Source: Laetmonice hystrix
Taxonomy: Eukaryota
Direction: 5' to 3'
Length of the DNA: 64,000 nucleotides
Assembly: GCA_965235115.1 (NCBI GenBank)
Contig: OZ249444.1
Coordinates: forward strand, 20,956,001 to 21,020,000
The position numbers and the translations under genes are program-made. The notes below the pieces were generated by a model. It was not told the origin of the DNA, did not search any database, and was given only the letters and a program-made list of their open reading frames with translations. Numbering within the stretch: position 1 is the stretch's first letter; every line of letters begins with the position of its first letter. This document shows, in pieces, positions 8,951-49,680 of this stretch.

Positions 8951-9010
8951 TGGGGTGGATGGGGGAGGATGGGGGAGGATGGGGGAGGCTTGGGGAGGAT
9001 GGGGGGTAGG
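8951..9010 (+). repeat. G-rich 10-bp repeat (GGGGGAGGAT) x~5-6, potential G-quadruplex
   Basis: Direct reading. Confidence 0.8.
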
Positions 9011-23058: not shown

Positions 23059-23235
23059 CCACTTGGTAGACAAGGCCAATGATTGGTTACGTAAAAACAC
23101 GGACGTACTACTGACGTCATGTGAAACGGTGACGTGGATGAGTACGAACCCGAAGGCTCTCGGTGACTCGGAGCAGGTGGTCCTCACGAAAAGTGTCTCC
23201 GAGCATGGCCATACACACTACAGGAGAGGTCTAAG
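23059..23235 (+). CDS. Gene 1 (uncharacterised four-repeat tail-anchored protein), first visible internal exon: HLVDKANDWLRKNTDVLLTSCETVTWMSTNPKALGDSEQVVLTKSVSEHGHTHYRRGL(R)
   Basis: Acceptor ttttcctgttttaacag| and donor AG|gtaaat. The 177-nt exon is open in phase 2/2, and its AN-x-WL, CETV and LR-LW motifs recur in downstream exons. The upstream exon was not located. Confidence 0.85.
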
Positions 23236-23450
23236 GTAAATACACAGTCTGATTACTTACACCAATCAACTCTCCTTCTTTGTCTCCCCGTTATGTCAGT
23301 GCTGATGTCAACACGATATTGGGTGACCGAACAGCCGCTCACATGTAGTGTGACGTCCTTCTGTGAACAGTAAAACTGTTCATACCTAATTAATTTTCAG
23401 TCTAAAAAAACAGATAGCCTGTAGTCTTATAACACCGCATGTGCAATGTA

Positions 23451-23527
23451 CAGAGTTTTTCAAAAGACTTTTAAGATTTTTGTGATACTATTGGTATCTG
23501 TAATGTTAACATTTTTGAAGCAACCTG
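23451..23527. mobile_element. Short Tc1/mariner-like MITE remnant (TA TSD)
   Basis: The ends read ta|cagagtttttcaaaa ... ttttgaagcaacctg|ta, an 11/15 TIR match. Confidence 0.45.
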
Positions 23528-23935
23528 TATGTACTCAGGGGACTGACGTCATGGCCTTGTGTTAAGCCCTTTTTTTCTGGTAGTTCAAGTATTAACTTCA
23601 GAGAAAGGTTACCCCAGGCACTGGGGAAACCACATGCAACGCAATTTTCTGTAGTCAGCAGTTTAGGACTTCAAAGTGAAACCCCCAGATTTACGTTGCT
23701 ACTGTTTCCATAGCAATGTCATCCCTCTCGACTTCCGCGTCTGGGAAGTTGTTTGTTTCAGATTTGTTATCGAAAACAAAGGTGGTTGATTTTACATTTG
23801 TATCCTGAGTGCAATGATAGAGGACGATTCATCCAATTATCCTTGTTGAGGAGGTATTCCTAACACGTCTTCTAGTAACATCTCTAGAGTAGGCCTCGAC
23901 CAACTACTACTGTGCTTGGCCCATCTAACCTATTA

Positions 23936-24104
23936 GTCCGATTTCCCATCCGATAATCAAAAAATCTATCAAAAACTATGTTTACAAAAAATCTGTCCAG
24001 TCATAATACGCCAGAATTATGCATATTATCACCTACAATTCTATAAAAAAAAAATCAGTTTCTTATCTAAAAGATCGGATGAGAGATCGGATGAAAATCG
24101 GGAC
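23936..24104. mobile_element. Inverted-repeat-bounded element remnant
   Basis: gtccgatttcccatccgat pairs with atcggatgaaaatcgggac (~19-bp imperfect IR). No TSD was seen. Confidence 0.4.
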
Positions 24105-26569
24105 AGGGACACCCGCTTTAATTACTCTACTTTGTATCTCACGTCAGTGTCATATTCTTCTTTTACCACCACGTAGATGGCAATTATTGATTCTACAAAG
24201 ACTGACTGATTCCTGTCAAAGACCAGTGGGACAGGAATCAGGCAACGTTCAGTGGGCAGTGGTGGGGTGTGCATGTAGTCTGACGTCAATCATAATGGCC
24301 CCATGTAACGGACAGCCACAGCTTTCCTCCTACTACCACCATGCCAGACTGAACCATAGCGGTCTGACTTCAGCCACGCCTCCATCAGGTTGGCGAAGAT
24401 CCACATCTACAAATCTACAGCTATGGTTACGAGAAAAATGGGACCCAAGCTTTTCCAAGATAATCTTCTTTGTCGATGACATTAATAATATCACGTTTTG
24501 TAATTATGTACACATAAAGAACCCACTGTAAAATTGTTGAAACGTACCTTTTCACTGTATTTATTCTTAAATGGCCATCATGTTGCCATAATATAACGTC
24601 TAAGTGAACTGCTAGTACCAATAAAAATCTGAAATGGACATTTACCTAGCAGATACAGGATCTTCCACTCGTATAATATAATAATACACATTGGAAATGT
24701 ACGTGGTTTATAGTTTATGAGTTTTCAGTGAAACATTTCCAAACAACTATCTCGTAAATAGGCAAGGAATGTGTTATTTACGAGACACTCTCATGCAGTG
24801 TACGAGCTCCTAGGGTCTCGGTGAAACAATCGCTAGGTGCCCACGGAGCGACGTGCCCTTCTTTACGAGAAGGTGCCCTTTCACGTTGATAGAAACTGCC
24901 CATCAAGAAACTGGTCCCTCTGAACCCCAGCTGCCCTCCTTCCAGCAATCTTAAACAGGTGTAGCCACCCTTGTTGTAGTTTGAACAGGTTACGGTCTGA
25001 AGATTACCAAAGTATCAACCAATTCTCTGGTACTAAAAGTAATCCCAGACAAATCTACTGAATACTACCATATAGATACCATTCAACTCTAGCGGTGCCA
25101 TGCAGCGCCCTCTACCGTTAAGTCACAGTCCATGCCATCCATTGCGTTATAGAATCCTAATGATTCTCGTCGCTTTGGATATGCCAATTCTCATCGCCAT
25201 GAGCCATCTTCTATCTCACATAACTGTTTTATGAACGCTATCTAGTACCTATTTCCCTAGCTATACAGCTATATTTCCCTATAGTGAGTGTCCGACATTT
25301 GAGCGACTCGGAGATGATATATGCCAGGTATGGGGGCCTGACCACCTATGACCACTGCGGCGGCCGTCACTAATGAGATCTGAGAGTGGGCTCACCTATA
25401 GACCAGACCGGAAGGTTGGGGCGTTACGAGCCCGGGGTCTGAACTTTTCTCTCCCGTCCGGGGTGGGGGGTGGCGGGTGGGGTGGGGGGGGGTGGAATGG
25501 GGGTCGTCATCAACGTTAGATAGGGCTGTGTGGGCACAAACACGTCCGTGAGAACACAGTATACCGGCGACCGTACACGGTCGTTAACGTAGGGGCCTAA
25601 AGGTCAAGGTTATCTTGGCGGTCTTAAAGGACGACAGGTCTCTCATCACCAAGGACATAATATACCACATACCCGTCGAAAATACACCTAACCCTTATTA
25701 CTATCCACGAGCACAGAAAATAACCAATAGCTGTAAGATTAAGGCGCTACGGATTCAGGATCGGCCTTGTATACAACATGTCATCTGGGGCTATCTCTCG
25801 ATGACCGTAACAAAAACAAAGGTCAATCATGAGACTATACCCCTTTATATGATCACTGTATAGTCATCTACGACTCGCAATGTTCATTATTTATTCCCCT
25901 TCATAGTGTTACAACAAAGGTAATGTCCTGAATGGAGGATATTTAATTGGGACAAATTCGATTAGGTCTCCAACATAGCAGAACTTCGATGACAGTCATT
26001 CGGCAGTTAGACCAATCCGTCTAATGATTTCAAAGGACATACATCCATCTACCTCTCCTCCGTGAACCTACTGTACTCTATTTGTTCTGTGCGGACCCTT
26101 GTCCGTATTTTTGTATTTTCCCCCGTGAAGACGGCTTTAGTCTCCGACTCGGCGTAAACCCGCCAACTCTCAATCATTCGTCCATTTGGTAAATGTCCAC
26201 ATACGTGGTTTGGTATCAAAGAAACTAATGAAATGTTGCCTTTACTTTTAACGCCGTCGTGTGCCAGACGATTATCATTAAAAACGTGAGCTTTATCGTT
26301 TCACTCTGCGAGATGCTGACAATGTTATTTAGGTAGAACGCGCCCCCAGGTTAATCCAGTTGTGTGGATTTTTGTGGATTATCTCTGTAACGAAGACACG
26401 TATCGAGTATGACACATAGTCAGTGTGGGTTTAACGTAAAGCATTGGTATCTATGACGTGCTCCCCTTAGAGTCATTTCCATTGTCAATCACTGTTGTCA
26501 ATATTGTCAATGACGCTATATTCCTGGTTCTAGGGGTAGCGAGTTTCAGCTTCCATTGAGCTCTAATTG

Positions 26570-27291
26570 CCTCACAAGTCCGACCATATCGCTGGTATCT
26601 ACGGCTAGTTAAACTACATGGACACGGAGATTGACTAACTTTGTCAGGTGACGATATTAAGTACTAGTAGGTCCTCACAAGTCTGACCAGATTGCTGGTA
26701 TCTACGGCTAGTTAAACTATATGGACACGGAGATTGACTAACTTTGTCAGGTGACGATATTAAGTACTAGTAGGTCCTCACAAGTCTGACCAGATTGCTG
26801 GTATCTACGGCTAGTTAAACTACATGGACACGAAGATTGACTAACTTTGTCAGGTGACGATATTAAGTACTAGTAGGTCCTCACAAGTCCGACCATATTG
26901 CTGGTATCTACGGCTAGTTAAACTACATGGACACGAAGATTGACTAACTTTGTCAGGTGACGATATTAAGTACTAGTAGGTCCTCACAAGTCCGACCATA
27001 TTGCTGGTATCTACGGCTAGTTAAACTATATGGACACGGAGATTGACTAACTTTGTCAGGTGACGATATTAAGTACTAGTAGGTCCTCACAAGTCCGACC
27101 ATATTGCTGGTATCTACGGCTAGTTAAACTACATGGACACGAAGATTGACTAACTTTGTCAGGTGACGATATTAAGTACTAGTAGGTCCTCACAAGTCCG
27201 ACCATATTGCTGGTATCTACGGCTAGTTAAACTATATGGACACGGAGATTGACTAACTTTGTCAGGTGACGATATTAAGTACTAGTAGGTC
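26570..27291. repeat. Tandem repeat, 103-bp unit, 7 copies (intron 1 of gene 1)
   Basis: cctcacaagtc recurs at 26570, 26673, 26776 and onward. Confidence 0.98.
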
Positions 27292-29317
27292 AAAAGCACA
27301 ACGTCAAGTAATTAAAAGAAAATACGTCAAATCATGATTGATCCTGAATATTCATGTATTACGTAGTCTCTATATATTTAATCTGCCTCCGTTTCAGTGC
27401 CCCTTCAGACACTTCAAAAAACTGTGAAGGAAAAAAGCAATCCTTCAGAACCACTTAAGTAATAAGGTCCACATAATGTTATATTGGACTTTATCATGAC
27501 GACCGGTAAAAATAATTAGTCCAATTCGCCACGAAAGGTCAGGTCCCAGACACGGCACCACAGGCCGGGTACCTGGCCAGGCCCTTCGAGATATCATCAT
27601 AACAGATTGGATATGGGACCTGCATGAGCTTACCGTCTTTATAGCCTAATCTATGTCGACATGAAACGAACACGCTCTATATCTCAGGCTTCCAATGCTA
27701 TTCTATCGCACCAAGCCTTGGATGTAGATTCTACCGCGCCGTAAAATATTGACATGGTCATCATCTACCGGTTCACATACATTCACCATGAAAATCAATC
27801 AGTTCAAATGGAATTCCTTTCCATGAAAGGGTCAGTTAGGCAGAACGGTACCGCCTCCGATACAGTATCAGACATCGTTTAAAACTAAAAGGGCATAGCG
27901 CTGTTCATTATGCCGCCAAACGCGGTACAGTCGCGATCGATTCATATTTGAATGCATGTACCCAGACAAATTGAAATTGATCTGCGCAAAAACGATGCCA
28001 ATTGTGTGGTTGTTCGACGTATTGGCTAAAGGGTCTGGCCATGTTGGTGGCATTTGGCAACCATGGCTGCAGATCTCCACGTTTGACAACAGGAGAGTCT
28101 GAGGCTTTTTACACCGTTCAGTATTCAAGTCTTTTTATATGCGGAAGCCGAACCGCAAGGCTGTGGGGCGGAATCATTTTGCCAATATGGAGCCGATGCC
28201 GGCTTGACATGTCCGATTCATGCTGGTGGCCACATAGGGTCAGATTGGCTGAGGTGCTCAGCATGATGCATTGTGAGATGGGCAAGGTGACACTGCCCTG
28301 CCATGCCGGGAACAGCTGGGTCACGTAACACACGGATTGCGACTTCACAGAACACACTCCTCTCTGCGTTCTGATACATCCGTGCAACCCACTCGGCATG
28401 ATCGACGGAACGTCATAAACGGTCAGAAAACACAAAAGGGGATTCACATTGCTTAAAAAAACATCTGGTTTCATTTGAAAAGGGATTTGACCAAAGAAAC
28501 CCGAAAGTATGTTTTTTTCTACATCGAAATGCCGTTACTGTTTTTGCGAATACCGTGCCTTAAAAGATACGAAATTGACAATGATATACCTCTGGTAAGA
28601 AGATACCATGTCCCCTAGTGTCCTCCCCTCCATCTTCTCTGCAGGACGTCTTGCCAGCAGGTTGCTGACGCTGCACGCATCTCGACCTCGCCGGAAGCCT
28701 TCCTCATTTAACACTTCCGGTCAGCTGCTACCCAACCCCTGTACCCCCTCCCATCTTTGTTATTTTACACGTTGTTCACAAACGACTTTTTCACATGGGA
28801 ACTGTTCATTTAGGATATCCTCCTTTGTTTCCTATCTCCGTTTCTCGCGTCAGTCGTGAAAAGACCGCGGTTCTGTGTTTAAAGTACGGTTCATTATGCT
28901 CTCTTAAATTTCCACCCGAAAGTTGTTTGTCACAATGAGGTGCCAAAGTGATTAAAAATTCCGTAGGAAAAACGAACACTGTGTCACACTCACTGTTACA
29001 GGAAGGAGAGACGGGACTGACGACAACGACAAGCTCGTTTGAAGGCCAATTCTTCAATCTAATATGAGGGAGCGGCAGCTGGTCGGCTGAAGGGCCGTCT
29101 CTCTCTCACAGACCTCGCGTAAAGAGGTGCTGGATACTTTGGACTGACAAAATAGTGTGAAGAAGATGTAATTGGAGGACATAAGCTTGTCGTTCTGCGT
29201 TGTTGTTTTTGTAAATCACTCTTTCCCCCCTAAACGTGGGAATAACTAGGAGGGAGCGTAAAATGACGAAATATTAACGTGAAATTCCAGTATTTCTTGT
29301 GTATCGTCAATACGTAC

Positions 29318-29682
29318 GAAACTGCAATATCTAGACACGGAAATCGTCATCAAATAGGAAACTTCGATATCTAGAACGAAAATCTTCATCAAATAGGAAA
29401 TTGTAATATCAGCCTAAAATCAGGGCACGGAAATCGTCATCAAATAGGAAACTGCAATATCTAGACACGGAAATCGTCATCAAATAGGAAACTGCAATAT
29501 CTAGACACGGAAATCGTCATCAAATAGGAAACTGCAATATCTAGACACGGAAATCGTCATCAAATAGGAAACTGTAATATCTGGACATGGAAATCGTCAT
29601 GAAATAGGAAACTGTAATATATGGACACGGGAATCTGCATCAAATAGGAAACTTCAATATCTGGACATGGAAATCGTCATCA
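29318..29682. repeat. Minisatellite, 40-bp unit (gaaactgcaatatctagacacggaaatcgtcatcaaatag), ~9 copies, one with an insertion
   Basis: Direct reading. Confidence 0.95.
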
Positions 29683-30247
29683 CATATAGTAAACCTAAGT
29701 AGTATGTATCAAGTGTAGGCTACATAGTGATGTGGCCTGGCCGGGGGCATGAAACAAGAGAATCACGCCCCCCCCCCCCCCCCAAAGCCTTGGACAACCC
29801 TAGCCGTGTCAGAGATAAAAGCACTCGCGTGGTCTTTCAGAAAGCACGCCAGGTTTCGACTGCTCCTGGAATTTCCATAGTTTGCCAAGTAATGGATTGG
29901 GCTAGACTGCTCGCGTGGAACCATAAATAAAAAATCTTCAAGTCGGAATAGGGTGTTTTTTACAACTTTCTCCAACTTGTTTACAGTTTTCCCCATGTTT
30001 CTATGGAATCCTTATCACTTTATCTAGTTCTTGGAGACTGCAAATCTTGCTGCTGGTCCAGCTGGTTTGTTGCCATAATGAATAATAATTATGAAAATGA
30101 AAACCACGTGAATGGTATAGGTGAATGAACGGCCACTTTTAGTAAAAACATGGAAGCGCCGTCTTCAATGAGACTTCCTTTTTGACTACCTGGTTAAGAC
30201 GCGAGTCTGTGAATTTGAAAACCGAGATTGATTGAGGTAGCGGCATG

Positions 30248-30330
30248 GGTTCTATACGAGGTACTGAAGGAAATACCCCGTTCACTTATCGGTTCTGTAC
30301 GAGGTACTGGAGGAAATACCCCGTTCACTT
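30248..30330. repeat. Two-copy 43-bp direct repeat (ggttct[a/g]tacgaggtactg[a/g]aggaaataccccgttcactt)
   Basis: Direct reading at 30248 and 30291. Confidence 0.9.
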
Positions 30331-31027
30331 TAAAGAAAACCAGCGTTTTTATTCAGACGGCCTTTTAAATGTCGCGGATGAAAGAGTTAAAGATTCCTTT
30401 GAGCAATCGACCTGTCTGTTTTTTAATGTCCACGACTCATTAGCAATTAATAATAAACGTTGCCTGGGTTTATCGTTAGGGATGACAACGAGCCGTTGGG
30501 GAGGGCGCCATAATGAGCTACATCATTGGACCTTCACAAAAGAGTAGCATATCATTCTGTGAGAATATAAAAAGAAAACCACCCACAAGTTATATAACAG
30601 GGGCCAATAAAAAGTCCAGTATATGGTTAGCCCCCCCCCCCTCCCCTGAAAGAGGGGGCGGGGTGAAAGTGACATACCATTGGCTGTCATGTAACAAATA
30701 TCCGGGGTGTTGAACGATAAAATCCAGAATTCTGGAACAGGAACAGGTGACAGGACCGTGTACTGTGCTGTCCTCGCACTGTGCTCGAGGGGCTATGGTC
30801 TATGGTCACAGTTGAGGGCGATTCAATCCCCCCCTCCCCTCCCACTGGATCCGTCACTGATATGGCCTGTATTCAACAATGACCAACTTGACCAACTTGA
30901 CAAAAGAATTATATAACAATTATTAAAGAATGGCCTAATGACAAGGGGCCTACTTACCACGATACACAAACCAATGAGGGTTCGCCGTGATTCCTTCCTA
31001 GCAATGTTCATTGGGTGTAGTCTTTCC

Positions 31028-31043
31028 CAGCGCCCCCTGGCGG
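31028..31043 (-). promoter_or_regulatory. CTCF-type motif (ccgccagggggcgctg)
   Basis: Match to the CTCF core consensus. Confidence 0.5.
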
Positions 31044-34000
31044 CTCCCACACACACTATCCGCCACGATTATAGATACAGGAGTTGACAACGACGAGCAG
31101 TCTGCCGATGATAAGCACAACAATAGAAGTCTACACGTGCAGCCTAAATGGATTACCTCCAAAGAATGCTTTAATCCCCAGAGAGGGGAGATGCCGAACA
31201 ATTGATAAGCTGTTTGGGACATTAATTTAAAGCTTTATGACCTTTGATTGTCTGATTACAAATTATAGCTTTTAGTTCCAACCAAACGCCCCTCTCCACC
31301 GCTCGCACTCAATCCGAGCGCCTCTACCCGTCCAATCATTAGAATGTCCTTAACGTAGGGTTAATTTCTATATACTGTCTGCCCCCAACGTTTTAAAACG
31401 TTTGAACACACCAGCCAGTCGGTGGGTGTACAGGCTGTTAATTCACGGATCGATGTATAGGAGCTTGTCTCGCCTCCAGAGCCCGGAGGGCGGTGGGGTG
31501 TAGGGACAGCACCCTGACACAGGGTTACTATGGGGGGGGGGGGGGGGGGTTACCACGTCTGCTATAGTCCTGCATCCCGTGGTGCGAGCTATAGTTGAAT
31601 GCAAACATAGATCGTATGATCTATATGATCTAGCCTTTTACCATGGATGAATTTACTGAATAGCTAAATTGACATCCGATAACACAACTTTTCATCATAC
31701 TCTAAAGATAATGAAAAAAAACTATTTGAGTGATGGTAATGGCTAAGTTTGATCAAATATGTATTAGGAAATAATATGAACGGTGTTCTTTGGAATAACT
31801 GTTTGATTTTTGTCTGCGTTTTGTGTTTTTGGTTGTATTGTGTGTTTTCCCCTTTTGATAGTATATTTCATTTAATAGTATTAAGCGGTATTAAGGCATT
31901 AGAGTGACAAAAATGTTTCTTGCCTATCCGCATTGGCTTCCATCCAAAAGATGATATTTGACACAACTACAGTTGAATGTAGGTTCTGACCTTGGATAGG
32001 AACCGTGCTCTGACTACCGTCCCGCCTGAAGGCCTACATGTTCTAGCTGACACTCTGGAAATGATGAATCAAAAAGTTAAACTATTTCCTTGCTTATTTT
32101 AACACCTCTCTACTGATGACGTTACAATGCTGACAGAGAAACATACTGATAGCATTGAAGATCCATGAGTATAGGAGCATATTGTCCTTGTGAGACAGAA
32201 ATTATTGTCTGCTTCTCTGATCATCGTGAACACTTTCAGCCACACGACCATGGTTTCTTGGTGCCGGTAAATGTTTCATGACGTAAATGTAATTAGGGAC
32301 TCCTAATGAGATCGTTTAATAAAGATGCCGTCCATAATTTATGTCCTGTCTCTCGATACCAACAAATGCTTGTCGTGCATATATTAGTATGGAGTTTTGA
32401 ACTGGGCTTACTGTAATACGGTTGGGTATATCGATACGTGTTCACCGTGTGAACAGTATTCGTCCGAGGATATCTTTAGTGAATATAATGATTAGAATAT
32501 TGAACTGATTGATGCCTGTATGCGAATATAAATAATATAAACTTACTGCGTTCCTTCAGTTTTCACGATTTGATCAATCCAGTAAATGATCATGTATAAT
32601 AATGAAAGACCTTGACATTGCTCTGTTACCGCGTCCTAACCTTTGCTCCGAGGAGATCTCCCTCATTACAGATTTCCAAGAATTTCTCTATCCATGGTCC
32701 TGCCCTTAGGAGGCAGACAGGTATAGTAAGCGTTTACGTATCCCAACTAAGTACCCGTATTTAAAAGGCTGCTTCATACATATACTTACAGGGGTACGAG
32801 ATTAACGGACCCCAATTGTTTGTCGTATTTCCGGCAATCCGTTTAGTGACAAAAGTGGAAGCCATTTTCAGAATCAGAACCCACTAATTCAGAGTGGGGT
32901 TCGCACGCTAAACAGACAATCGCCGAGAAATCCTAGGAAATCACCCCAGTGGGCCAATACCTATACCCACCCCCACCCTTACCCCATACCCCTGCTTTGT
33001 GAGAATTCCCACTTAACTTGCTTGTCACGTTCAGGTACCACTTACAACGACATCCTGGGTCTTGCCAAGCACAGACCAGCCTCGAGGGATGGCAAGGATC
33101 ACATTATAGGCCGGTCCTGAGAGGTGCCTGCTTGTTGTGATCGGAGAGGATGCGATGGCATGGCCACTAATGTACGCCCATCGCTACCGGGATGGGATTA
33201 TATGAAGGGCAGTCAGCCTCGCAAGCAGAGGTCAACTGCCATTAATCGGGCATTTAGATCAATTGTGATGCGTGGAGAAAGGGAGTGGCACTTGTGATGA
33301 CAGCCAGTATGGCTTGTTTTTGCTGCTGATGGCACTGTGGGTACAGTAATCTCTTGTCATTACATGTTCCGATCGAAAGGGTTTGGGTTGAAAACTAGAG
33401 AAAAACTTTGCTACGCTTGAGGCAGTGTTTAGGAAAACCTGCTAGGGGAGGGCCATCCAAACACAGGTTCAAAGCGAAATGCTTCTGGTTCAAACCTGAT
33501 ATGGCTACTTAAGGAGGATATAGCCTCCTCTGTGCCCATAATATATGTAAGCGCAGTCACAACATAAAATTACGTATAGCTCATGTAATTTCAAAAGTGA
33601 GTTTACGTCCGCCATTTATTGGAAGTATGCGCTTTACTTATTTACACGCAGTAATTACAGCTTGACCAACAGAAACTAAATTATGGACCTGACCTAATTC
33701 TTCTTGGACGCCAAGTAACCAAGAGTATTAGGCCTACATTATTCATCCACCCACGATCCATCCGATTGGTTAGAACCACTAAGTGGCTTCAGCATGAGCC
33801 AATCGAAACGTTTCATTTTATACGAGCCATGTTTGAGCGTGCAAGCATCCGAAGTCCATATTAAGGGTGTGCTCCCATGCAATCTTCAAGCCCAGAATAT
33901 TGTAATTACCTTGTGAATGTTGCGTGACCGCAACCAAAGATACTTTCTAAGACCTCTGCCTGACCCATTACGACTGAGTCTCATCTTCCTGGACTCCATG

Positions 34001-35961: not shown

Positions 35962-36104
35962 ACTATGGTTGGGATCGAGGTTTGGAAATGTCAAGCGACA
36001 AAATCAGACTTTATGCTTCATGGATTACGTACCGGAACAAAAGGACGACTTTGGCAGCCTCGTCAGCAGGGCCAACAACAAGCTAGACCAGAATGCAATT
36101 GGCG
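35962..36104 (+). CDS. Gene 1 exon: (R)LWLGSRFGNVKRQNQTLCFMDYVPEQKDDFGSLVSRANNKLDQNAIG(G)
   Basis: Acceptor atatctttcag| and donor G|gtaagt. The 143-nt exon is phase 2/1 and joins the previous exon to give GLR-LW. Confidence 0.88.
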
Positions 36105-39100: not shown

Positions 39101-39143
39101 CATGTCGCCGACAAAAACTTAATCCAAACGGCATAGGGCCTAA

Positions 39144-39361
39144 GGGGCGGACCATTTGATACGTGGGGAGATATGGTTTTGGAGTTTTTTTGTGGGGGGG
39201 GGGGGAGATCTGTTCACCAAATACATGGAAAAAATAGTTTGTTCCATATGTAAAAAAATCGAAATGGGGAAAAATAGTTTGATTAATGGTCATCGCCTGG
39301 GGACCAAAAAAGTTTGCTCATGCAGAAAAACCCTAGCCCCCCCCCCCCCCCCCCCCAACGT
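39144..39361. mobile_element. Truncated Harbinger-type MITE (left end taa|ggggcggaccatttgat, poly-G/poly-C subtermini, right terminus missing)
   Basis: The terminus style is recognised from other invertebrate MITEs. There is only a residual inverted match (acgtgggg / ccccaacgt). Confidence 0.35.
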
Positions 39362-42236
39362 GTTGTACTTTACAAGACGGCGCTGTTAGCGGAGATTCTG
39401 TCCCACGGTAGAATAAAATAAACACTTTTTTTGCCTGACACCTGCTCCATCTGGTTTAGGCCTGGGGTACGTCGATTGGCATGGATTTAGAACACGGCCG
39501 TGTAACCTAGTGTGCCGCTGTATCCTCTATCGTTTACATTGAGTAATCAATTTTCCTGACTGAATCATTACACTGGGGGTTGGTTGTGGGGAGGGGAGGG
39601 GTCCAGGCGGTCCCCACGTAATGGACATTGATTGCTGGGGGAGGGGAGGGGGTAGTTTGGGTGGGATCACTGCGGATCCTTGCTCCCAAACGACAAGTTG
39701 TCGCCAGTCGAGGCCCCGTGGCAGGTGGCAGAGAGTAGGGTTGTATATCAGTGACGTCATTGACAGTGGAGATCCGTTTTGTGGGATGTTACTATGGGAA
39801 AATAAACATTGACGCATCAACTCATGTCCAAGGCGCCCCCCCCCCCCACCCCACCCCGTCTTTCTACCCCCCTCTCCTTCCTATGCCCGGCCATATGTCC
39901 CAGGCGCCCCCACCTTCCCAGTCCCCACTGATGAGCCGCAGGCGAGCAAGGCCCAATCAAGGTATAACCCCAAGGTGGCCGTCCTCCTATCGGACGATAT
40001 TTGTTGCCATTGTTGCCGCTGGCCTTCGTACACCAAAATACACAGTCGGAGCCTGGGCAGCTCACTGGTCTCAGTCTACGTAGATGTGAACTCATGGTTT
40101 TACTATAGTGGGCTTCAAATTCATCCTTTAACCTTCAGAATTGCCCACACATTGCAAGTGTTCGTATAGTGGTGGGACGCAGACTTTAGGTCGTGTGTAT
40201 TCCCGTCATATATGTGCCATGATTGCCGTAAACACCTATAGGGACCCCGATTTTATTTGGACGGGTGTGCTCTTTCAAGTGTTTACCCTGCTACGTCAAC
40301 TCACATTTTGAATTTAACATACTTTTAATTGGTCATGTTATAGAAGTGACACACGCGATTACCCCACATCTCATGTTGACTGACGTTTATTCATTACCGC
40401 TACATTTGCCCGGTAAGCAGTTCTTAGCATGACGATGTAAGGTTCTACCCAACACTTTGCGTGCATGCTCCCTTGGATGTTACTAATGCTGCTCCACATA
40501 TCGTCGTACAGCCTATACCCATGCAGGAAACCCACATGTTTTTAGGAAATACGGATCTACCTACGAAATATGCTCAAGGGATGTATTATTATTTCCATGT
40601 TACGTTCAATGATGGTCTAACGGAATATAGTAAGAAGAGCAGAACACACAACTAAAAACGTTTGGTGGGGCACGTGGTTCAGCTAGTTATACGAGTTACA
40701 CGATATAATTACAGCAGACATAATACTTCATCCAACCTGTTCATAGTTTGAACGCTTTCAACCAGTCAGGAAGATCTGCAAAGTTTTTTGTAATTACAAT
40801 CATTATAATTATGTACAACTTAATTGGTGGGGTAATATCATCAGTGTATCATCACAATTATTCATAGCTTCTGTCCCTTTTCATCGTCAGTACCGATTAC
40901 TGTATGCTAATTAGAACGCAGCATCAATAGAAATAGAGTTCTGATGTTCGATCAGTTCTATTGCTTTGTTTTTATATTAGAACAATTTTCTCATATTGGG
41001 ATGTAACAGAAATAACACTACTTGCGACATCTTCATATTTCATATACTGCGAATACGGCCAGTTCAAGGTTAAATATCTAAATGCGCGGCCCCTTGGATA
41101 CAAACTTCGACCCTTTTATAACGTTTTAACGGCATTAGTTTTAGAGGACGGTAGATAAGAGATCAGCAGGGGACAAACAGCAGATGTACGCAGCTGTTCA
41201 TGGAAAGAGTTGGGTCCCACGATGGAGGATGATGTGCGAGTGACTTGGTTAGTTGTTCAGGCTATATAACACTGGAGAGGATCAAGTTTAGATCTAGCAT
41301 AGAACTAGGCAACGTCAGTCTAGTTCTGTGGATCCAGCGACGCTCTGTTTGAGCGTCTAGGGGCCAAGGATATTGTCCCTATACTGGACATTGGTTACCG
41401 AAACGACGTTAGCGTGTTGCAGTCTTTCGAGAGCGTTGGTAATTAAAAGTCGAAATGACGCCAGATGGCGTGACTGTCCTGATAGAAGACAGACGTAAAA
41501 TTGATATCGTTTGGTTGTGGTGCCGCTACGTACAAACAACCTAAACGGTATTTTAAGGCTGGGGAAACACAGTGAAGATATGTAGAGCCTCTTTAACGTG
41601 GATGTCATGCACACAACGATTGGAATAATCCATTAGCCAGCCTAAGCCTTATTGTGTGTGATTATTCTATTTAGATCTATGATTTCGCTATAGGCCTAAA
41701 GGTGGCTTTAGGCTAATTCAGAGTTGCCACTCCCACTTCGAAAAAAGTGGGAAATCAAAAATATAGAGAGTCTACTTTTCTGGAAATTCTGCCAAGTTAA
41801 CAACGGCCCTCTCCTCGCCCCATAAACCTATTGAGGATGGCTATAGGTCCTTCTGATATGTTTACCTTTAACACACCAATAACACCTACCGGCGGTCACC
41901 CGAACACTACACCACAAGTAGCGACTAACCTCTGAGCATAGATCTAACAGTTATCCGGCAGAGGCAGAGGGGTAGGGGGATCGTTGATGGAACCATGCAC
42001 CGTCTGTGTGGTAACCCTGCCATGCTCCGGCCGGTCATTAACGACCACAGCGCCACTTCACCATAGCGTTACACCGACTAGCGGTAAAACACTGTGCTGA
42101 ACGGATACATGACAGAATGGCCAGGCTGTTGGCGCCAAGGCGACCCACTAAACAAGTTAACTGGCGTTAAAATATTTCTCGAATCTGGTGGAAATAGCTA
42201 AATTCAGTATCCTTAAAGTTTGTCGCTGATTGCAGC

Positions 42237-42961
42237 TTCTCCCATACCCAGAAGTAGACTCTAGCGTTCTGAAGCTCTCCCACACCCAGGAGTCCTAGCG
42301 TTCTGAACCTCTCCCACACCCAGGAGTAGCGTTCTAAATCTCTCCCACACCCAGGAGTAGCGTTCTCAACTCACCTCTCCCACACCCAGGAGTAGCGTTC
42401 TGAATCTCTCCCACACCCAGGAGTAGCGTTCTGAATCTCTCCCACACCCAGGAGTAGCGTTCTCAACCCACCTCTCCCACACCCAGGAGTAGCGTTCTGA
42501 AGCTCTCTCACACCCAGGAGTAGCGTTCAGAACCCACCTCTCCACACCCAGGAGTAGCGTTCTGAACCCACCTCTCCCACACCCAGGAGTAACGTTCAGA
42601 ACCCACCTCTCTCACACCCAGGAGTAACGTTCAGAACCCACCTCTCTCACACCCAGGAGTAGCGTTCAGAACCCACCTCTCTCACACCCAGGAGTAGCGT
42701 TCAGAACCCACCTCTCTCACACCCAGAAGTAGCGTTCAAAACCCACCTCTCTCACACCCAGGAGTATCGTTCAGAACCCACCTCTCCCACACCCAGGAGT
42801 AGCGTTCAGAACCCACCTCTCTCACACCCAGGAGTAGCGTTCTGAACCCACCTCTCTCACACCCAGGAGTAGCGTTCTGAACCCACCTCTCCCACACCCA
42901 GGAGTAGCGTTCTGAACCCACCTCTCTTACACCCAGGAGTAACGTTCAGAACACACCTCTC
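42237..42961. repeat. Minisatellite of mixed 31- and 35-bp units (agcgttc[a/t]gaa[ccca]cctctc[t/c]cacacccaggagt), ~21 copies
   Basis: Direct reading. It explains ORFs 42736..42921 and 42857..43042. Confidence 0.97.
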
Positions 42962-43810
42962 CAGCCCTCTTGAATGAAGCCGCCTGACAATTGTACCTAA
43001 CATAATGGAGTATTGACCCACTGCACCCGTAGTATCTGCCACGTGGAATACTGTGTTCGTCGATCAAACCTGACAATAGTAGGACCTGATCCTCCATGCG
43101 AATTTCACCATTCAGTTTTTACACTGGCCGCCTGTTTGCCGTGTCTGGCATCAAAATAACACCACCGGTATAATATTATGGGGCCCGCTGCAGAATTGAA
43201 TAATGTGTTAATTTTCGGGATAGGTTGTGAATTCATGTAATTATTGGTTTAATCAACCCTAGAGGGAGGGACAGAAATCAAACACGTCAATCAACCAACC
43301 AAGGGTGCGATCTACTAAAGACCTCACTATCTTTAAATCTAGAAGTTTGAACCCTCAAATAAATCAGGGGTGGATCTAACAGGGTCAATTCGGAGTCCTT
43401 TTCCAGAACAACTAGAGGGGTTCCTGTCCATGGATCCGCTCCTGTAGTTGTGATCTCTACCATGAAGATTCAATATTGGGGTTGAATCAGTGGATCTACG
43501 GCACTACTGGACGTTTCATGTCGTTTGATAAAGGTTTGGCAAAAGGGTTCACCTTAGAAAGATACAGACCTAATTGTGAAGAAGTAGGCCTATTGACCAA
43601 CCAATCTTTAGTTACTTCCAACACAAGACATAGACTTTCACCATTCAAAGGGTGGTCATTCCTCAGAATAACAAGGACAATCTGGTTGGGAATCATTAAT
43701 CATATATTCTTACTCGGCTAATTTACGGTGTGGCGCAGGGAACATTGTCTTTTCACTAACCTATTCCTGGCCAGGCGACCGCCATACTGTCGCCTTTACG
43801 TCACGTCAAT

Positions 43811-43825
43811 GGCGCCCTCTGGTGG
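43811..43825 (-). promoter_or_regulatory. CTCF-type motif (ccaccagagggcgcc)
   Basis: Match to the metazoan CTCF core consensus. Binding is not demonstrated. Confidence 0.5.
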
Positions 43826-44620
43826 AAATTACTTGCCGCCTCAATATTCGTCCAGCCAATCAGCAGTCGGTAAATGATTAGCAGACGATATCCGGGTACG
43901 ATTGGAACGTGCTGACCCGCACCCCGGCTCCACAATCACCAGCTTCATCTGATTGCTATGTGCTATGCCATGTCACAGAGTTATTGAGTAGCAATTACTC
44001 TGTGGCCGATAGACGACTTCTTAATTGAAATAGATTCTTGAAGCAAAAGGAGTTATATAATAGATGTAGGCCTAATGGATTTTGAAAATGTGGCAGTTTT
44101 GATTACCCTGGGATATTGTATTTGCCGACGGTCATGCCCCGATGTTTGGGTATACCTAGGGTCAACTGAGGTACCAGCACTATAATTATAAACCAGGCTA
44201 CTGCAAGGTATAGATCTATAGATTGTCGTCCTTATATAGGCCAAGGCCTTGTGTGACCAATATATTTTTGTTGTTATTGGGGTTCCAGAAATCGTATGAA
44301 GAAAACTGGGAAACGTCGGCATATTATTAACATTATGATAATTGATACCAAGAGTAGATGTAATCCATGAAAGCCTGACCAGAAGTATTCCGTCATAGCA
44401 ATACAGGGGTCTGTCTTACTAATGGTTAAATGTACCTGGCCGTGAATGGTAGACCTCTGGTTAATGGGATCGTTATTAACCAGAGACTCTTCATTCATTC
44501 CTATTGACGTTAACGATATCGTAAATAACCAGACCTTAGTAAGACAGGCCTTAGGTTTGATTGCTCAATCTTAGGATATTGAGAATCAAATTGATATTCT
44601 CCCTTTTTTTCTTGTTTCAG

Positions 44621-44779
44621 GCAAAGTGTTAACGCTGGAGACGGTGAATGTTCCCATTGTTAATGGTAACGTAGAGTCGGGAGGATGCAGCTGGTCGGAA
44701 AGCACGGATGAAGACAGCCCGTACGCGTTCGTTCTTCGATTGTTCTTTACTCGAGAAGAGCCGGCAAAGGAAAATATAG
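44621..44779 (+). CDS. Gene 1 exon: (G)KVLTLETVNVPIVNGNVESGGCSWSESTDEDSPYAFVLRLFFTREEPAKENI(G)
   Basis: Strong acceptor cccttttttttcttgtttcag| and donor G|gtcagt. The 159-nt exon is phase 1/1 and carries the LETV and LRLF repeat motifs. Confidence 0.88.
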
Positions 44780-45381
44780 GTCAGTAGTTGTTGCTCAAAA
44801 ACAGGAAATATCCCTGGTCCGGATGCTGGTAACAAAGGACAATGGCGTGGCGCGTCATCCGTATAGTGAGCGCGGTGGGAAGAGTAATAGTATTCGAGAA
44901 TAGTAATTGCGGTAGATGGTCCGAACGATAGATTTTCACGAGGCCTTTCCCAGGCAAGTAGCGTTCACGAATCGGCTGAGTAATGTTCGCTGTAAAAGGA
45001 AGATGTGGGCATGCTTCTGTAGGGCAGAAATTTCATGTCAATTTACAATACTCGAAATCATCCTATTTCAAACTACTATACATAGGACGTGGCAGGCAAT
45101 CTCGCAGTAATATTGGGAAAGATACCCTTTTACTTTATGCCTAGACTCTCTATGTGCCGTTAAAGACAATTAGAACCATTCGTACCTTGGTATGACGACC
45201 AGCAATTTCTCGTCTCTATCAGGCCCTGTAATGTAACAATATGGTGTTACATGAAATACAAAGCAAAAAATATAACATCTTTGTGACCGACTGGTGAAAG
45301 CCTTGCCAACCTTGCCCAAAATGTAAAAGCGCCAATGGCACCTCTTTTCCCGTCAACACCAGCAACAAACACACATGACGT

Positions 45382-45790
45382 ACTTCCGGTACAGTCCAGT
45401 TTCACATCATTTCTCCGGAAGTAACCCGCCATTCTGGCAACCTTCAGCAGTTTCTCTTCGGTAATGTTCGGCGGATTTCCGGCGATTGAGAAACGGATTA
45501 CATCGCCGCTTGAGGGCCAGAGTTGTAACTCTCCTGCAGCTGAAAGGTGCGCCACCTGGCGAGAATAATCTTTCAAATACAGTCAATATGTCATGACAGT
45601 CAGTTATTGGAAGAGAATTAACAGACATCGCAGGGGAAATGGTCGTCCCAGCGGGTCTCTGCGCCGGAGACTGTAATCTGATTGTAGTCAGGAGTTGGGA
45701 ATGAACCCCGGCGCGTCTGGTGATGACGTCAGAGGGTGTTAGCTCCTCCGGGAAGAAAAGCGTTTCCACTCACTTCCGGGACGTCACGTG
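45382..45790. promoter_or_regulatory. CpG-rich promoter/enhancer-like patch in intron 3 of gene 1 (3 ETS sites, CRE, E-box)
   Basis: ACTTCCGG at 45382 and 45772, CCGGAAGT at 45415, TGACGTCA at 45724 and CACGTG at 45785. Confidence 0.4.
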
Positions 45791-46256
45791 ATGGCTTTAC
45801 AATGAACGCTGATCGTCACTGCACAGCTCAAGTTCTAATTCATTCATGACCCCTTGCTACTCCGTGTTTTGTCAAATCTAGCACTCATCCTTCTTCACTG
45901 GCCCTGATGATGGCATTTACCCTCAGGTACACTCGCTACATCATATGAATACATTCACACGGCACACACAGAAAGGTACCACAACACGAAACTTAGGCCT
46001 ACGTTTATCGGGTTTTTTTCAATAGCAGTAAGCGTTGAAACAGCTATAGAACATAAAGTACCTCGAATTGTACTTTACAATCCTGATCCGAATTGAAGTG
46101 TAGTCAGGTCTATAGAGGTCTGATGGGGGGAGAGACATGTGGGAATGCTGAATTATTCCCGATTGTAAACGATAGAAGAATGAAAGCTGTGCTGCTGGCT
46201 TTTTACTTTAATACTACAAACATATATTTGATTTCTGACTTCATGCTGTCTTTCAG

Positions 46257-46400
46257 GTGTAAAAGACTTCATTCCCCATCCCACCATGGCTGGATACGAA
46301 CCCTTCCCACAGCTCATAGAGAAAGCCAACACATGGCTTAAAGATCAAACCGATGTACGGGTCACAAATATGCAGTCTCTGATGGTACCTAGGGACGGCG
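46257..46400 (+). CDS. Gene 1 exon: (G)VKDFIPHPTMAGYEPFPQLIEKANTWLKDQTDVRVTNMQSLMVPRDG(G)
   Basis: Acceptor tgctgtctttcag| and donor G|gtaggt. The 144-nt exon is phase 1/1. LIEKANTWLKDQTDV is clearly homologous to LVDKANDWLRKNTDV in the first visible exon. Confidence 0.9.
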
Positions 46401-46866
46401 GTAGGTGTCGCCTTTATTCATGTATTTTATCCCCATAACTCAGATCACAGGGACCTATATAACTTGGACACAGTAGGAAATAAAGGCAGTGGCGTAGCTA
46501 AATAATTTAAATGAAAATGTACATTCTTGTCTCAATGATATTGGATATTGCCCAAAAACCTCAAGCAATCATCTAGCACCAATGCATACCTTCATGGTAT
46601 GCAGTGGTGCTAATATATGATTCCTTGGAATAATGGAATAGGCCTAAGGATTATAATAAAACTTCACAGTCTGGACTCAAACTAACAGTCATAGCCTTCC
46701 GTCCTTGTTCTTCGATCCTTTGCAAGTTGCTGTAAGGTCGGTGTATTTCCGGGTACCCTGGATCCATCCAGCAACCAAATTCGACCCCCCCCCCCCCCCC
46801 CCCCCCAATCCCTGCTCAGCTCCTATTGCGCCCCCTGACGGTTCCCGTTCTGGCGTGCTCCCACAG

Positions 46867-47130
46867 GTCCTCATTCAGAGACGGGCACGGCCTGTTTCTT
46901 TAGTCTCCCGGGCGTGCGGAACGAGCACCCGGCCGAATTCTTCCGGATCCTACGGGTGGCCTTCAGCCGACCCACGGGCGAGCTCCTCACAGAGCTACCC
47001 ATCATCTACCCCTTCACCTTCGAGTCATTCACCCCAGAGCTTATCACCCCAAAGACCGGCAAGAAGAAGGAGCGAATGGAAAAAATGAAAGAATTATTTT
47101 CTAGAATCAATAGCTTCCTTAGAGGCACAG
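46867..47130 (+). CDS. Gene 1 exon: (G)PHSETGTACFFSLPGVRNEHPAEFFRILRVAFSRPTGELLTELPIIYPFTFESFTPELITPKTGKKKERMEKMKELFSRINSFLRGT(D)
   Basis: Acceptor gtgctcccacag| and donor G|gtaggt. The 264-nt exon is phase 1/1, overlaps ORF 46914..47207 and has a strong C-ending codon bias. Confidence 0.88.
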
Positions 47131-47471
47131 GTAGGTTAAATCCTGGGCCCTTTATTCATTGTCCAAATCATTATTTATTACATAGCATCAGGATATACTC
47201 TATATAGGCCGACTATAAATCCATATCTGACCAGATTAAAAAATAGACTGAATTCATACAGAATGGGCCATGACTAATTCTAATTTCTTCTTTTACACTT
47301 ATGACTTCTCCAACTGCTTCAAATAATACGGGAGAAACTTACTGATGTCTAGGAAATATGTCTTTGTTTATGACATACTAGTTCGAACTTATAATAAAAG
47401 ATTGACATTTTATTATGATTCAATATTTCAATATTTAGATCTACATGGTCTTTACTTGTTAAATATTTCAG

Positions 47472-47580
47472 ATCTGGACATAATATGTGCGGAGACAGTG
47501 CTGAACCCCATGCAGTTGGTAGTGGACGAGACGTCCCATCGTGGCAGTGAGGAAATAATGACATGGCTAATTACGTGCAG
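47472..47580 (+). CDS. Gene 1 exon: (D)LDIICAETVLNPMQLVVDETSHRGSEEIMTWLITC(R)
   Basis: Acceptor aaatatttcag| and donor AG|gtaact. The 109-nt exon is phase 1/2, only this frame is open, and it has the CAETV motif. Confidence 0.82.
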
Positions 47581-47668
47581 GTAACTCTCTCCCCGGATTC
47601 CGGTCACATGTCGTTAATGCAGGAAACTAAATGCAGGAAAAATCACCCCAAGAAATTTGCTCTGTTTA

Positions 47669-47838
47669 GGGGCCGTTCAATAATTACGTAACGCTATTTT
47701 GGGCCAAATTTGCCCCCCCCCCCCCCCTGTAACGGTCTGCAGTGGTACTTCAGCACTGTCTGTAACGTTTGGACATAGGCCTACCCCCCCCCCCCCACAC
47801 ACACACACCCAAGCGTTACGTAATTTTTGACCGGCCCC
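47669..47838. mobile_element. PIF/Harbinger (Tourist-like) MITE, 26-bp TIRs, TTA TSD
   Basis: The ends read tta|ggggccgttcaataattacgtaacgc ... gcgttacgtaatttttgaccggcccc|tta (2 mismatches in 26). Confidence 0.9.
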
Positions 47839-47995
47839 TTATGTAGGCCTATAGAAATGTGTCATAGTAACCTATCATAAATTATTAAGCCGCCACGAGT
47901 CATGAGTTGGCTAATTCTCTTAACAACTTTAGGGCTAGACCTAAGTAACACCTATAGGCCTACGTTGTGCACCCCACCCCACCCCACCCGTACCC

Positions 47996-48021
47996 CCACC
48001 ACCACCACCACCACCACCACC
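47996..48021. repeat. (ACC)n microsatellite
   Basis: Direct reading. Confidence 0.9.
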
Positions 48022-48907
48022 CTTTCGGTAGGTCCACGTTGGCTCCCTTGGAGTTATCCGCGACAGAGAAGGCCGAGACCTAGCCTACGTGTAGGCCTAT
48101 AGGCCTATAACAACTCCATCATCCAAAGTTAGTCTACCTAGTCTCCTTTCTCCCCACCGCGTTCCGGCGTCCATGTTAGCTCATCGTGACCAGGTGACGT
48201 GACCACACCGTGACTAAACAGTTAGCCCACCAGTATTTCAAGATGACCTTAACGTTAAAGTTGCCCTGTTTCACAACGGGAAATCCTCAAAATTAAATGG
48301 CCAACGTGCGGAAGTACTTACCGTTTAGTTCAAGCATGACGTCATGGTTATATGCCATTTGTTACCCATGGCACGATGACGTCAATGGCCATCCCAGTAA
48401 TTGCCCAACATCAAAGCGGGTTCGCATCCACAAGGTACGTCTGGCTGATTGCGTGACCTCCGGGGGTAAATGCTAATCCCCCTGCGTTTAGTTTACCCCT
48501 GGCTGGGTTAATACGTCTTATTCGTTTTTTGACCCGGCCCTCCAAGCTAATAACTGTAAAGGGCCTGACCTGACCTCTGGCGACTGGCCGCCATGTTCTT
48601 TAAAACGTCCTCGTGTCACCAGAGGGCGCTCCGGTAGCAGGGGAGAAAGTCGTCATGGCTTTGAGAGTGCGTGTGTGAAGGCGAGAGTAAACAAAACGAT
48701 AAACAAGACCCATTTCTCCTTGCTCCGATCCATCGCACCTCAAAGTAGGATAGTTTTCAGGACATGACCCTAATGAGCAATGATTATTGATGAGATGTTG
48801 CTGCCTTTGAGGGCATAGCTCTTGTCGGAAGGTTGTGGCCCCAACTGTCCATGGTTCAGGGTAGGCTATGCTAGGCCTAATTAGGGCAATGAGAAGTAGG
48901 CGTAGCC

Positions 48908-49054
48908 NNNNNNNNNNNNNNNNNNNNNNNNNNNNNNNNNNNNNNNNNNNNNNNNNNNNNNNNNNNNNNNNNNNNNNNNNNNNNNNNNNNNNNNNNNNNN
49001 NNNNNNNNNNNNNNNNNNNNNNNNNNNNNNNNNNNNNNNNNNNNNNNNNNNNNN
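48908..49054. other. Assembly gap (147 N) in the last intron of gene 1
   Basis: Run of N. Confidence 0.99.
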
Positions 49055-49418
49055 ACTGGGCTTTAGGCATAATGCAAAATGCAGTAGGCCTATTTCATAT
49101 AGTTGCAAACATATGAGAGGGAAGATGCGGTAGATCGTTTTTTGGCCTGGCCAAGCCGATGTTGAACCAGTCAGTCAAAAAGTTCAATTTTTAACATTTA
49201 TTTCATAGCTTAAAGATTTACGGCTCAAAAAGCTTAACTTAAGTATGGAACAAAATGATAACCCATGATGCATCAAAGCTTAAAAGACGGTAACTTTTTG
49301 CCCAATTCCCCACATCCACTCCATAGGCATCTATAGTCCTGATAACTTAATGCTACCAAAGACCTTCTTTGATGTTACTGCATAGTCGTTTTCAGTTGTT
49401 ATTTCGTACATGTTGAAG

Positions 49419-49680
49419 GTTATACCTGACGGGCCAGATCTCGGCAGCGTCCCCTGACGGAGTTATTCGGCCCACCCCGGCCTCCAACCTCACCTCCCGC
49501 ACATCCGGGGCTTCAACCCGGCGGAAGGAGCGCAAACCGAGCAACGACCACCCGGGGCCCATATTCCTCCGCCGGGTGACAACAGGCCGACGCCCCTACA
49601 AAATGCTGGTCGCATTCATCTGTATTTTTGTCAGCATCGCTATTATTGTTGTCCTCAGTGTCGTCTACAGCAACCAATGA
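49419..49680 (+). CDS. Gene 1 terminal exon: (R)LYLTGQISAASPDGVIRPTPASNLTSRTSGASTRRKERKPSNDHPGPIFLRRVTTGRRPYKMLVAFICIFVSIAIIVVLSVVYSNQ*
   Basis: Acceptor ttatttcgtacatgttgaag| in phase 2 gives CR-LYL, matching the repeat motif. A 22-aa hydrophobic helix (49603-49668) is preceded by basic residues and followed by SNQ-stop (TGA 49678-49680). Confidence 0.75.

Follow-up and report, generated by a model that had tools for sequence, protein, structure and literature searches.

Gene structure at the locus

The stretch of DNA analysed here (the window) is a 64-kb segment of the Laetmonice hystrix genome (assembly GCA_965235115.1, contig OZ249444.1, positions 20,956,001 to 21,020,000 of the forward strand). 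It carries seven of the eight coding exons of an intact animal gene, the remaining exon being located upstream (Table 1). The deduced product is a 524-amino acid (aa) protein with four tandem repeats and a C-terminal transmembrane helix. An earlier reading of the window made from its letters alone (the sequence-only reading) had proposed seven phase-compatible exons of 1258 nucleotides (nt) in total, encoding about 418 aa, and this proposal was reproduced exactly. Thirteen of the 15 amino acid motifs that it quoted were placed on the + strand, where that reading had put them, by a six-frame scan of the window; the remaining two (GLRLW and TCRLYL) are formed across splice junctions. All seven exons have an AG acceptor before them and a GT donor after them, most with a pyrimidine tract as well, and the spliced sequence is a single open frame of 418 aa ending at a TGA stop codon.

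The first exon in the window opens with one base completing a codon, and the seven-exon model is therefore incomplete at its 5' end. The motif expected at the start of repeat 1 (W-K-L-K-Y-Q-D-F-x-P type) was not found by a motif scan of window positions 1 to 23058. A single occurrence was found in the 60 kb upstream of the window (L006:7734, i.e. G000:C10:20923734). It belongs to an exon that supplies the strand missing from the start of repeat 1 (WKLRYQDFVP), with a donor phase matching the first exon in the window. The frame of this exon exhibits two ATG codons (L006:7485 and 7506), from which the deduced N-terminus is MPWLL or MSRAG, respectively. A search of the genome with the N-terminus of an orthologue (P0071) returned no match, and the exon was later located by the motif scan. 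The full coding sequence thus comprises 1575 nt in eight exons, free of stops and frameshifts. The first intron spans about 55 kb, of which the final 23 kb fall inside the window. A candidate upstream exon within the window (22476-22530, LRKYDYFP) was rejected: it has neither an acceptor nor a start codon, stops occur directly upstream of it, and its spacing to the helix of repeat 1 is too short.

All seven splice junctions align to orthologous sequences free of insertions and deletions (indels), and the split codons rebuild the conserved residues R, G, G, G and R. The sequences compared were five uninterrupted orthologous open reading frames on contigs of mRNA size (1.6-2.8 kb), together with the Capitella gene. 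Exon order, orientation and intron positions in Capitella match those of the L. hystrix gene. In the searches and modelling described here and below, exon translations and orthologues served as queries, standing in for the spliced protein. With the translation of coding exon 6, 69 representative clusters were matched (E-value ≤ 1 × 10−3), many of them exon-sized open frames with the same boundaries. The same query matches this locus only in the 627-Mb L. hystrix genome, the gene being single-copy by that query.

The last intron (47581-49418) contains the only run of N in the window, which 1327 nt separate from the donor and 364 nt from the acceptor. The junction across it (47580/49419) is in phase 2, its split codon AG/G rebuilds an arginine invariant in the family, and it is indel-free against six orthologues. 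The Capitella intron interrupting this codon measures only about 46 nt and hides no exon. Thus, no coding sequence is expected in the N run.

The only three public sequencing runs found to hold exon sequence of this gene, of a kind not stated in their records and all from one sample, proved to yield genomic DNA contigs, with even coverage across introns and no splice joints. Over the region compared (44400-48900), the assembly and the DNA contigs exhibit 35 differences (26 substitutions and 9 indels), all of them intronic. The absence of differences from the 676 exonic bases, against about five expected (P about 0.003, all three runs being from one sample), fits purifying selection.

Four homologous repeats and their predicted fold

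The four related modules that the sequence-only reading had recognized hold in the spliced gene. When single repeats are compared, only two pairs score clearly against 500 shuffles (z = 10 for repeats R1 and R3; z = 5.6 for R2 and R3), the remaining pairs being weak. With profiles obtained by dividing a 45-member family alignment into four units, all six pairs are related (HHalign probability 97.7-99.7 %, E-value = 2 × 10−12 to 7 × 10−27, 80-94 columns). These profile comparisons show the four repeats, of about 90 aa each, to be homologous at the sequence level. Each unit conserves one arginine in its last strand and proline, asparagine, tryptophan and glutamate residues at framework positions. 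A phase-2 intron in the codon of the invariant arginine is common to R1 and R4, and a phase-1 intron just before strand 2 is common to R2 and R4. Such sharing of intron column and phase between repeats suggests that the unit already carried introns when it was duplicated in tandem.

We modelled the orthologue P0071, which is 45 % identical to the L. hystrix protein, with AlphaFold2 from nine sequences (mean predicted local distance difference test, pLDDT, 72; predicted template modelling score, pTM, 0.72). The four units are modelled at residues 32-116, 132-206, 219-306 and 322-408, mostly with pLDDT > 85, while the N-terminus and the linker are disordered and one helix is found at the C-terminus. 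A single unit modelled with 48 unit sequences exhibits the same topology (pLDDT 83). The sequence-only reading had described the unit as beta-alpha-beta-beta; both models place a fourth strand in it (beta-alpha-beta-beta-beta). An ESM model of a mollusc relative cluster superposes on the P0071 model over 372 residues (3.3 Å; template modelling score, TM, 0.67), so that the compact four-unit arrangement is reproduced by a second method on a distant relative. The four units thus probably form one compact body, as far as predicted structures can tell.

It had also been suggested that the modules resemble YbjQ, Cse60 or dodecin and that four fused copies make a pseudo-oligomer. The part of this suggestion concerning the fusion stands as probable, given the pTM of the P0071 model and the mollusc ESM model; the kinship with YbjQ or dodecin is not supported. 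YbjQ (DUF74), dodecin and Cse60 are absent from the 50 matches listed in each of two PDB searches with a single unit (Foldseek and VIA-align), an absence from these lists which does not amount to exclusion. The only trace of such a relationship is a weak match to a bacterial ESM Atlas cluster of which 30 % of the members carry Cse60 (TM 0.49/0.68 over 58 residues), carrying little weight at that length. More generally, the start of the unit is arranged like the generic beta-alpha-beta-beta sandwiches (SHS2/GyrI-like half-domain, Cse60-like), which likewise exhibit one helix on a small antiparallel sheet in the order strand-helix-strand-strand.

The C-terminal linker and tail anchor

A disordered basic linker and a 22-aa tail anchor ending three residues before the stop codon had been predicted from the window, and our analysis confirms both (Table 1). 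Residues 500-521 are the sole hydrophobic segment of the protein, with a grand average of hydropathy (GRAVY) of 3.0; the next best 19-residue Kyte-Doolittle window scores 1.02. The linker has a net charge of +9, and the orthologue model agrees with both assignments. The protein thus exhibits a single transmembrane segment at its extreme C-terminus, a tail of three residues and no other hydrophobic segment. Its N-terminus is polar and disordered, and no signal peptide is present. Within the tail-anchored clade described below, mean pairwise identity is 62 % for the helix and tail, 58 % for the juxtamembrane motif and 39-52 % for the repeats. Such a maximum of conservation in the helix and the juxtamembrane motif may point to a specific intramembrane partner or to a dedicated sorting step.

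Table 1. Positions of the coding exons and other features of the four-repeat gene (window coordinates unless a locus is given)
Feature	Position	Strand	Remarks
Coding exon 1 (outside the window)	L006:7485-7801 = G000:C10:20923485-20923801		about 32.2 kb before window base 1; phase-2 donor CA/GTGAGT
Coding exon 2 (exon 1 of the sequence-only reading)	23059-23235	+	repeat 1 helix and strands 2-4; ends in the invariant Arg codon, phase 2; tblastn to orthologues, E-value = 5 × 10−21
Coding exon 3	35962-36104	+	end of repeat 1; repeat 2 strand 1 and helix
Coding exon 4	44621-44779	+	repeat 2 strands 2-4; identical in DNA contigs of three runs
Coding exon 5	46257-46400	+	repeat 3 strand 1, helix and strand 2; identical in DNA contigs
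Coding exon 6	46867-47130	+	repeat 3 strands 3-4; repeat 4 strand 1 and helix; identical in DNA contigs
Coding exon 7	47472-47580	+	repeat 4 strands 2-4; ends in the invariant Arg codon, phase 2
Coding exon 8 (last)	49419-49680	+	end of repeat 4, linker, transmembrane helix, SNQ, stop
Disordered basic linker	49435-49602	+	residues 444-499; ends in the juxtamembrane motif HPGPIFLR; orthologue pLDDT < 50
Transmembrane tail anchor	49603-49668	+	SNQ and stop at 49669-49680; helical in the orthologue model
Assembly gap (N run)	48908-49054	.	inside the last intron
Minisatellites	5156-5829, 11080-11724, 15395-16555, 26570-27291, 42275-42962, 54076-54620		first intron, later introns and flank

Orthologues and the tail-anchored clade

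The L. hystrix protein exhibits 36-47 % identity to full-length orthologues, including that of Capitella. Three annotated proteins belong to the same subfamily (blastp, 30-49 % identity): Capitella CAPTEDRAFT_193210, Helobdella HELRODRAFT_166549 (30 %) and Paralvinella LSH36_256g03021. They carry the same linker motif as well as a transmembrane helix that is nearly identical and ends in SVVYSN. All three are uncharacterised and annotated as hypothetical proteins, and their public models are flawed. The first coding exon of the Capitella gene (WKLKHQDFLP...QPFQ) is located at L020:2199-2291 (KB310457.1), 8 kb upstream of the annotated start, and the public N-terminus of CAPTEDRAFT_193210 (residues 1-88) is therefore mispredicted. 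The Helobdella model (P0044) is devoid of an exon for the first half of repeat 3, the counterpart of coding exon 5, and the Paralvinella model (P0074) exhibits a transposase-like insert of about 90 aa exactly at the RGLR/LWL intron position; both the missing exon and the insert look like annotation errors. A maximum-likelihood phylogenetic analysis places all tail-anchored proteins on a single branch (Shimodaira-Hasegawa-like approximate likelihood ratio test, SH-aLRT, 100), with the L. hystrix protein beside that of Capitella. So far this clade is composed of sequences from annelids and unnamed transcriptomes.

No Pfam family was matched by the seven exon translations, by single orthologues (E-value ≤ 1) or by the 45 family members. 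A Pfam LIP1 match of coding exon 2 was discarded, being sub-threshold (E-value = 0.055, 14 bits) and not repeated in any full-length member. A profile search against PDB sequences yielded nothing below an E-value of 0.1, PDB searches by Foldseek and VIA-align returned background matches only, whether the whole model or one unit served as query, and ESM Atlas feature searches gave no usable match for either exon 6 or P0071. A word-based homologue search with the annelid alignment returned only 11 proteins and missed known members, thus understating the size of the family. Among the matches, a 3901-aa multi-C2 repeat protein (P0040) is a compositional false positive. In a literature search, no paper was found to mention these proteins or invertebrate relatives of Raftlin. 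The sequence-only reading had pointed to unnamed invertebrate proteins of this pattern with no assigned function, and this was borne out by the Pfam results and by the sister family described below, all members of which are uncharacterised. The four-unit family is unnamed and widespread in invertebrates, where it is conserved and unstudied.

A sister family with C-terminal CaaX boxes

A search from a Nymphon relative retrieved 52 proteins, all uncharacterised, from ticks, spiders, scorpions, a horseshoe crab, an ostracod, amphioxus, a nemertean, molluscs and annelids. The L. hystrix protein matches the CaaX-type Nymphon protein itself with a blastp E-value of 7 × 10−25 over 332 aa. Proteins of this sister family, such as those of Ornithodoros (LOC135399270), Branchiostoma (LOC109475120), Lineus (LOC135491515) and Haliotis (LOC124270253), exhibit the four units in unchanged order at 20-28 % identity, along with the last-strand arginine invariant in every unit and a C-terminal tether. 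The occurrence of a body of four units in series in both groups is supported by blastp, a joint alignment, HHalign and the structural model. The nature of the tether distinguishes the two groups. The sister family has no transmembrane helix, and it is found on the opposite side of the branch with 100 % support. A Cxxx end is present in 39 of the 52 proteins (CCxxx in 26 of those 39), and a PPxY motif occurs within the first 40 aa in 36 of the 52. A C-terminal CaaX box with an additional cysteine is a signal for prenylation plus palmitoylation, and PPxY is a ligand of WW domains. Neither the CaaX box nor the N-terminal PPxY is present in the L. hystrix protein or in any of the eight members of the transmembrane clade.

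The L. hystrix genome contains several CaaX-type paralogues. Exon-wise matches were observed on C21 (at about 1.50, 5.49, 9.33 and 17.85 Mb), C18 (3.60-3.64 Mb), C1 (13.03 Mb) and C8 (C8:11337639-11338928), and by their number the family has expanded in this genome. The C8 copy, which is part of an uninterrupted open frame of 1066 aa, may be intronless or fused.

Structural resemblance to Raftlin

The nearest named structure in three libraries, at weak scores, is Raftlin (RFTN1, RFTN2; PF15250), a vertebrate raft protein of the cytosolic membrane leaflet. In a Foldseek search of the Swiss-Prot AlphaFold models, Raftlin-2 and Raftlin occupy ranks 1-3 (E-value = 3.5 × 10−4 to 4.3 × 10−3, probability 0.97-0.99). 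Two further Raftlins appear lower in the list, the range for all Raftlins being E-value = 3.5 × 10−4 to 2.4 × 10−2 and probability 0.85-0.99. Among the AlphaFold DB clusters, the top 17 matches are unnamed or doubtfully auto-named (best E-value = 4.9 × 10−23); judging from their accessions, they presumably come mostly from annelids, mites, amphioxus, brachiopods and a tardigrade. The first credibly named cluster is Raftlin family member 2 (E-value = 4.9 × 10−4). In the ESM Atlas, a PF15250 cluster follows directly after the two clusters of the family itself (TM 0.34 over 231 residues, 5.6 Å). The alignments pair approximately residues 1-450 of our model with residues 1-430 to 22-490 of Raftlin. 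These comparisons of predicted structures agree in hinting, if weakly, at a kinship in fold between the two families, while no sequence match between Raftlin PF15250 and the family of the L. hystrix protein is detectable.

Raftlin is likewise made of a cytosolic body of about 450 aa with a terminal membrane anchor beside a basic stretch. The anchors differ: Raftlin is held at its N-terminus by a myristate on Gly2 and a palmitate on Cys3, with basic residues at positions 7-15 (bioRxiv 10.64898/2026.01.04.697584), whereas the L. hystrix protein has a C-terminal transmembrane helix. Neither of its two possible N-termini presents a Gly2-Cys3 dual acylation site, and the N-termini of the orthologues vary. 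Work on Raftlin has dealt with immune signalling and the endocytosis of receptors in vertebrates, and the protein has a role in receptor signalling and clathrin-dependent uptake. Raftlin1 is also reported to co-precipitate phospholipids and to recruit them to RORgammat (PMC10435467). The searches made brought up neither a solved structure of Raftlin nor an account of its domains.

A six-frame PF15250 search of the whole genome matched only another locus, on C1. There, an exon on the minus strand (G000:C1:71102134-71102346; L009:1228-1743:-) corresponds to the last 74 positions of PF15250, with a score of 21 bits (E-value = 1.6 × 10−4), below the gathering score of 29.4 bits. The exon encodes a strand motif, K-D-W-x-P, and after it a helix that ends with tryptophan. 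On this sequence evidence, a Raftlin-like gene probably exists at this separate locus. Because this Raftlin-like exon is on another chromosome, the gene in the window is not the Raftlin orthologue.

Possible function and alternative explanations

Given the gene structure, repeats, anchor architecture and family relations established above, we consider the best explanation to be that this intact gene encodes a tail-anchored four-unit protein that serves at a membrane as a Raftlin-like scaffold or adaptor on the cytosolic side. We hold this explanation to be true with slightly better than even confidence. The protein would comprise a disordered N-terminus, four tandemly duplicated units packed into one rigid body, a flexible basic linker of about 55 aa, the conserved juxtamembrane motif, the 22-aa hydrophobic helix and three final residues. 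Because there is neither a signal peptide nor another hydrophobic segment, the helix would be inserted post-translationally, leaving the body in the cytosol. Its hydrophobicity and the uncharged tail suggest that it would enter the endoplasmic reticulum (ER) by the GET/TRC40 route. Under the targeting rules established for tail anchors, such an entry is favoured by high hydrophobicity and a short uncharged tail; the anchors of mitochondrial proteins are shorter or less hydrophobic, and basic residues follow the helix. The ER and the secretory pathway are thus the target that we infer. Facing the cytosol on its flexible basic tether, the body would act as a membrane scaffold or adaptor; by analogy with Raftlin, this is its most likely function, and it would organise membrane-proximal complexes or receptor traffic.

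Several observations weigh against this explanation. The link to Raftlin is structural only and weak (TM 0.32-0.36). PF15250 was matched neither by the exon translations and orthologues (E-value ≤ 1) nor by the 45 family members (E-value ≤ 10), and an HHalign comparison of the unit profile with the Raftlin-like exon of the genome itself was not significant. The structural model is that of an orthologue at 45 % identity and not of the L. hystrix protein, and the structures with which it was compared are all predictions. No RNA evidence was obtained for L. hystrix, the three runs found being DNA, and the splicing therefore rests on homology. A purely passive anchor does not explain why conservation is highest in the transmembrane helix. 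Finally, the results bear on function, partners and target membrane by inference only, none of them directly.

The scaffold explanation has to be weighed against several others. The body might handle lipids, binding or presenting phospholipids or hydrophobic ligands at the bilayer as has been proposed for Raftlin1. The co-precipitation of phospholipids by Raftlin1 and their recruitment to RORgammat (PMC10435467) speak for this idea, as does the fact that all three related groups are held at membranes by a flexible tether. Yet no cavity or lipid-binding motif was seen (the coordinates were not inspected) and the kinship with Raftlin is itself weak. A lipid-handling body seems rather unlikely. 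We consider it about equally improbable that the anchor directs the protein to mitochondria or peroxisomes, where it would be an organelle-surface factor. Tail-anchored proteins are also found in the mitochondrial outer membrane and in peroxisomes, and a strongly basic segment precedes the helix. But the targeting rules given above expect a shorter or less hydrophobic helix with basic residues after it, against a helix of 22 aa with a GRAVY of 3.0 and an uncharged SNQ tail in this protein; moreover, the CaaX and cysteine anchor of the sister family is typical of the plasma membrane and endomembranes.

Four fused YbjQ-, Cse60- or dodecin-like modules could also constitute a pseudo-oligomer tethered to an organelle, with a small-ligand or flavin-type binding function. 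The apparent packing of four homologous units as one body is what such an assembly would exhibit, but there is a fourth strand in the unit, the 50 matches listed by each of VIA-align and Foldseek include neither YbjQ nor dodecin chains, and no ligand-binding motif is conserved, the invariant residues being the last-strand arginine and the framework positions. We regard this assembly as quite improbable. Least credible of all is that the gene model is an artefact, either a pseudogene or a set of exons misjoined across a mis-assembled gap. The lack of RNA evidence for L. hystrix, the assembly gap between the last two exons and the first intron of about 55 kb might raise this suspicion. Against it stand 1575 nt with neither stops nor frameshifts, canonical splice sites throughout, junctions that are all seamless against orthologues with split codons rebuilding invariant residues, the exon order, orientation and intron positions shared with Capitella, polymorphisms that avoid the exons, and a single genomic copy by the exon 6 query. 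An artefact is very hard to credit.

Returning to the scaffold explanation, the three anchor types found on similar bodies indicate that tethering to the cytosolic leaflet is the common theme. Raftlin, the CaaX family and the tail-anchored clade may constitute one ancient bilaterian superfamily, in which the same four-unit cytosolic body is combined with N-terminal acylation, C-terminal prenylation and palmitoylation, or a C-terminal transmembrane helix, the helix of the tail-anchored members not being a passive one. We advance this tentatively and with somewhat less than even confidence. If the kinship is true, the body of Raftlin becomes readable as four duplicated small units, Raftlin gains a deep invertebrate history, and the repeated exchange of anchors argues that membrane tethering on the cytosolic face is an essential property. 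The tail-anchored clade would then be a natural anchor-swapping experiment in tractable annelids. In itself, the gene adds one more conserved protein with no assigned function, of which the flawed hypothetical orthologue models can now be corrected. The first exon, the additional strand in each unit, the resemblance to Raftlin and the CaaX-ended sister family are new with respect to the sequence-only reading.

Repetitive sequences around the exons

In addition to the gene, the window exhibits abundant repetitive DNA. At positions 62443-63505, a 24-nt unit present in 44 copies gives rise, on both strands, to open frames of 311 and 389 aa. Pfam E-values obtained for these frames were dismissed as spurious, no matched stretch passing alone. 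Minisatellites with units of 35-50 nt in 15-26 copies, and one with a 103-nt unit in seven copies, are found in the introns and the flank (Table 1). In the last intron, a CAC/CCN-rich tract (47958-48080) encodes poly-His or poly-Pro in all three frames, and the DNA contigs break there. The depth of the DNA contigs rises from about 30-60 to about 1,000-10,000 at positions 44400-44550 and 47571-47872, which are therefore high-copy interspersed repeats of intronic location.

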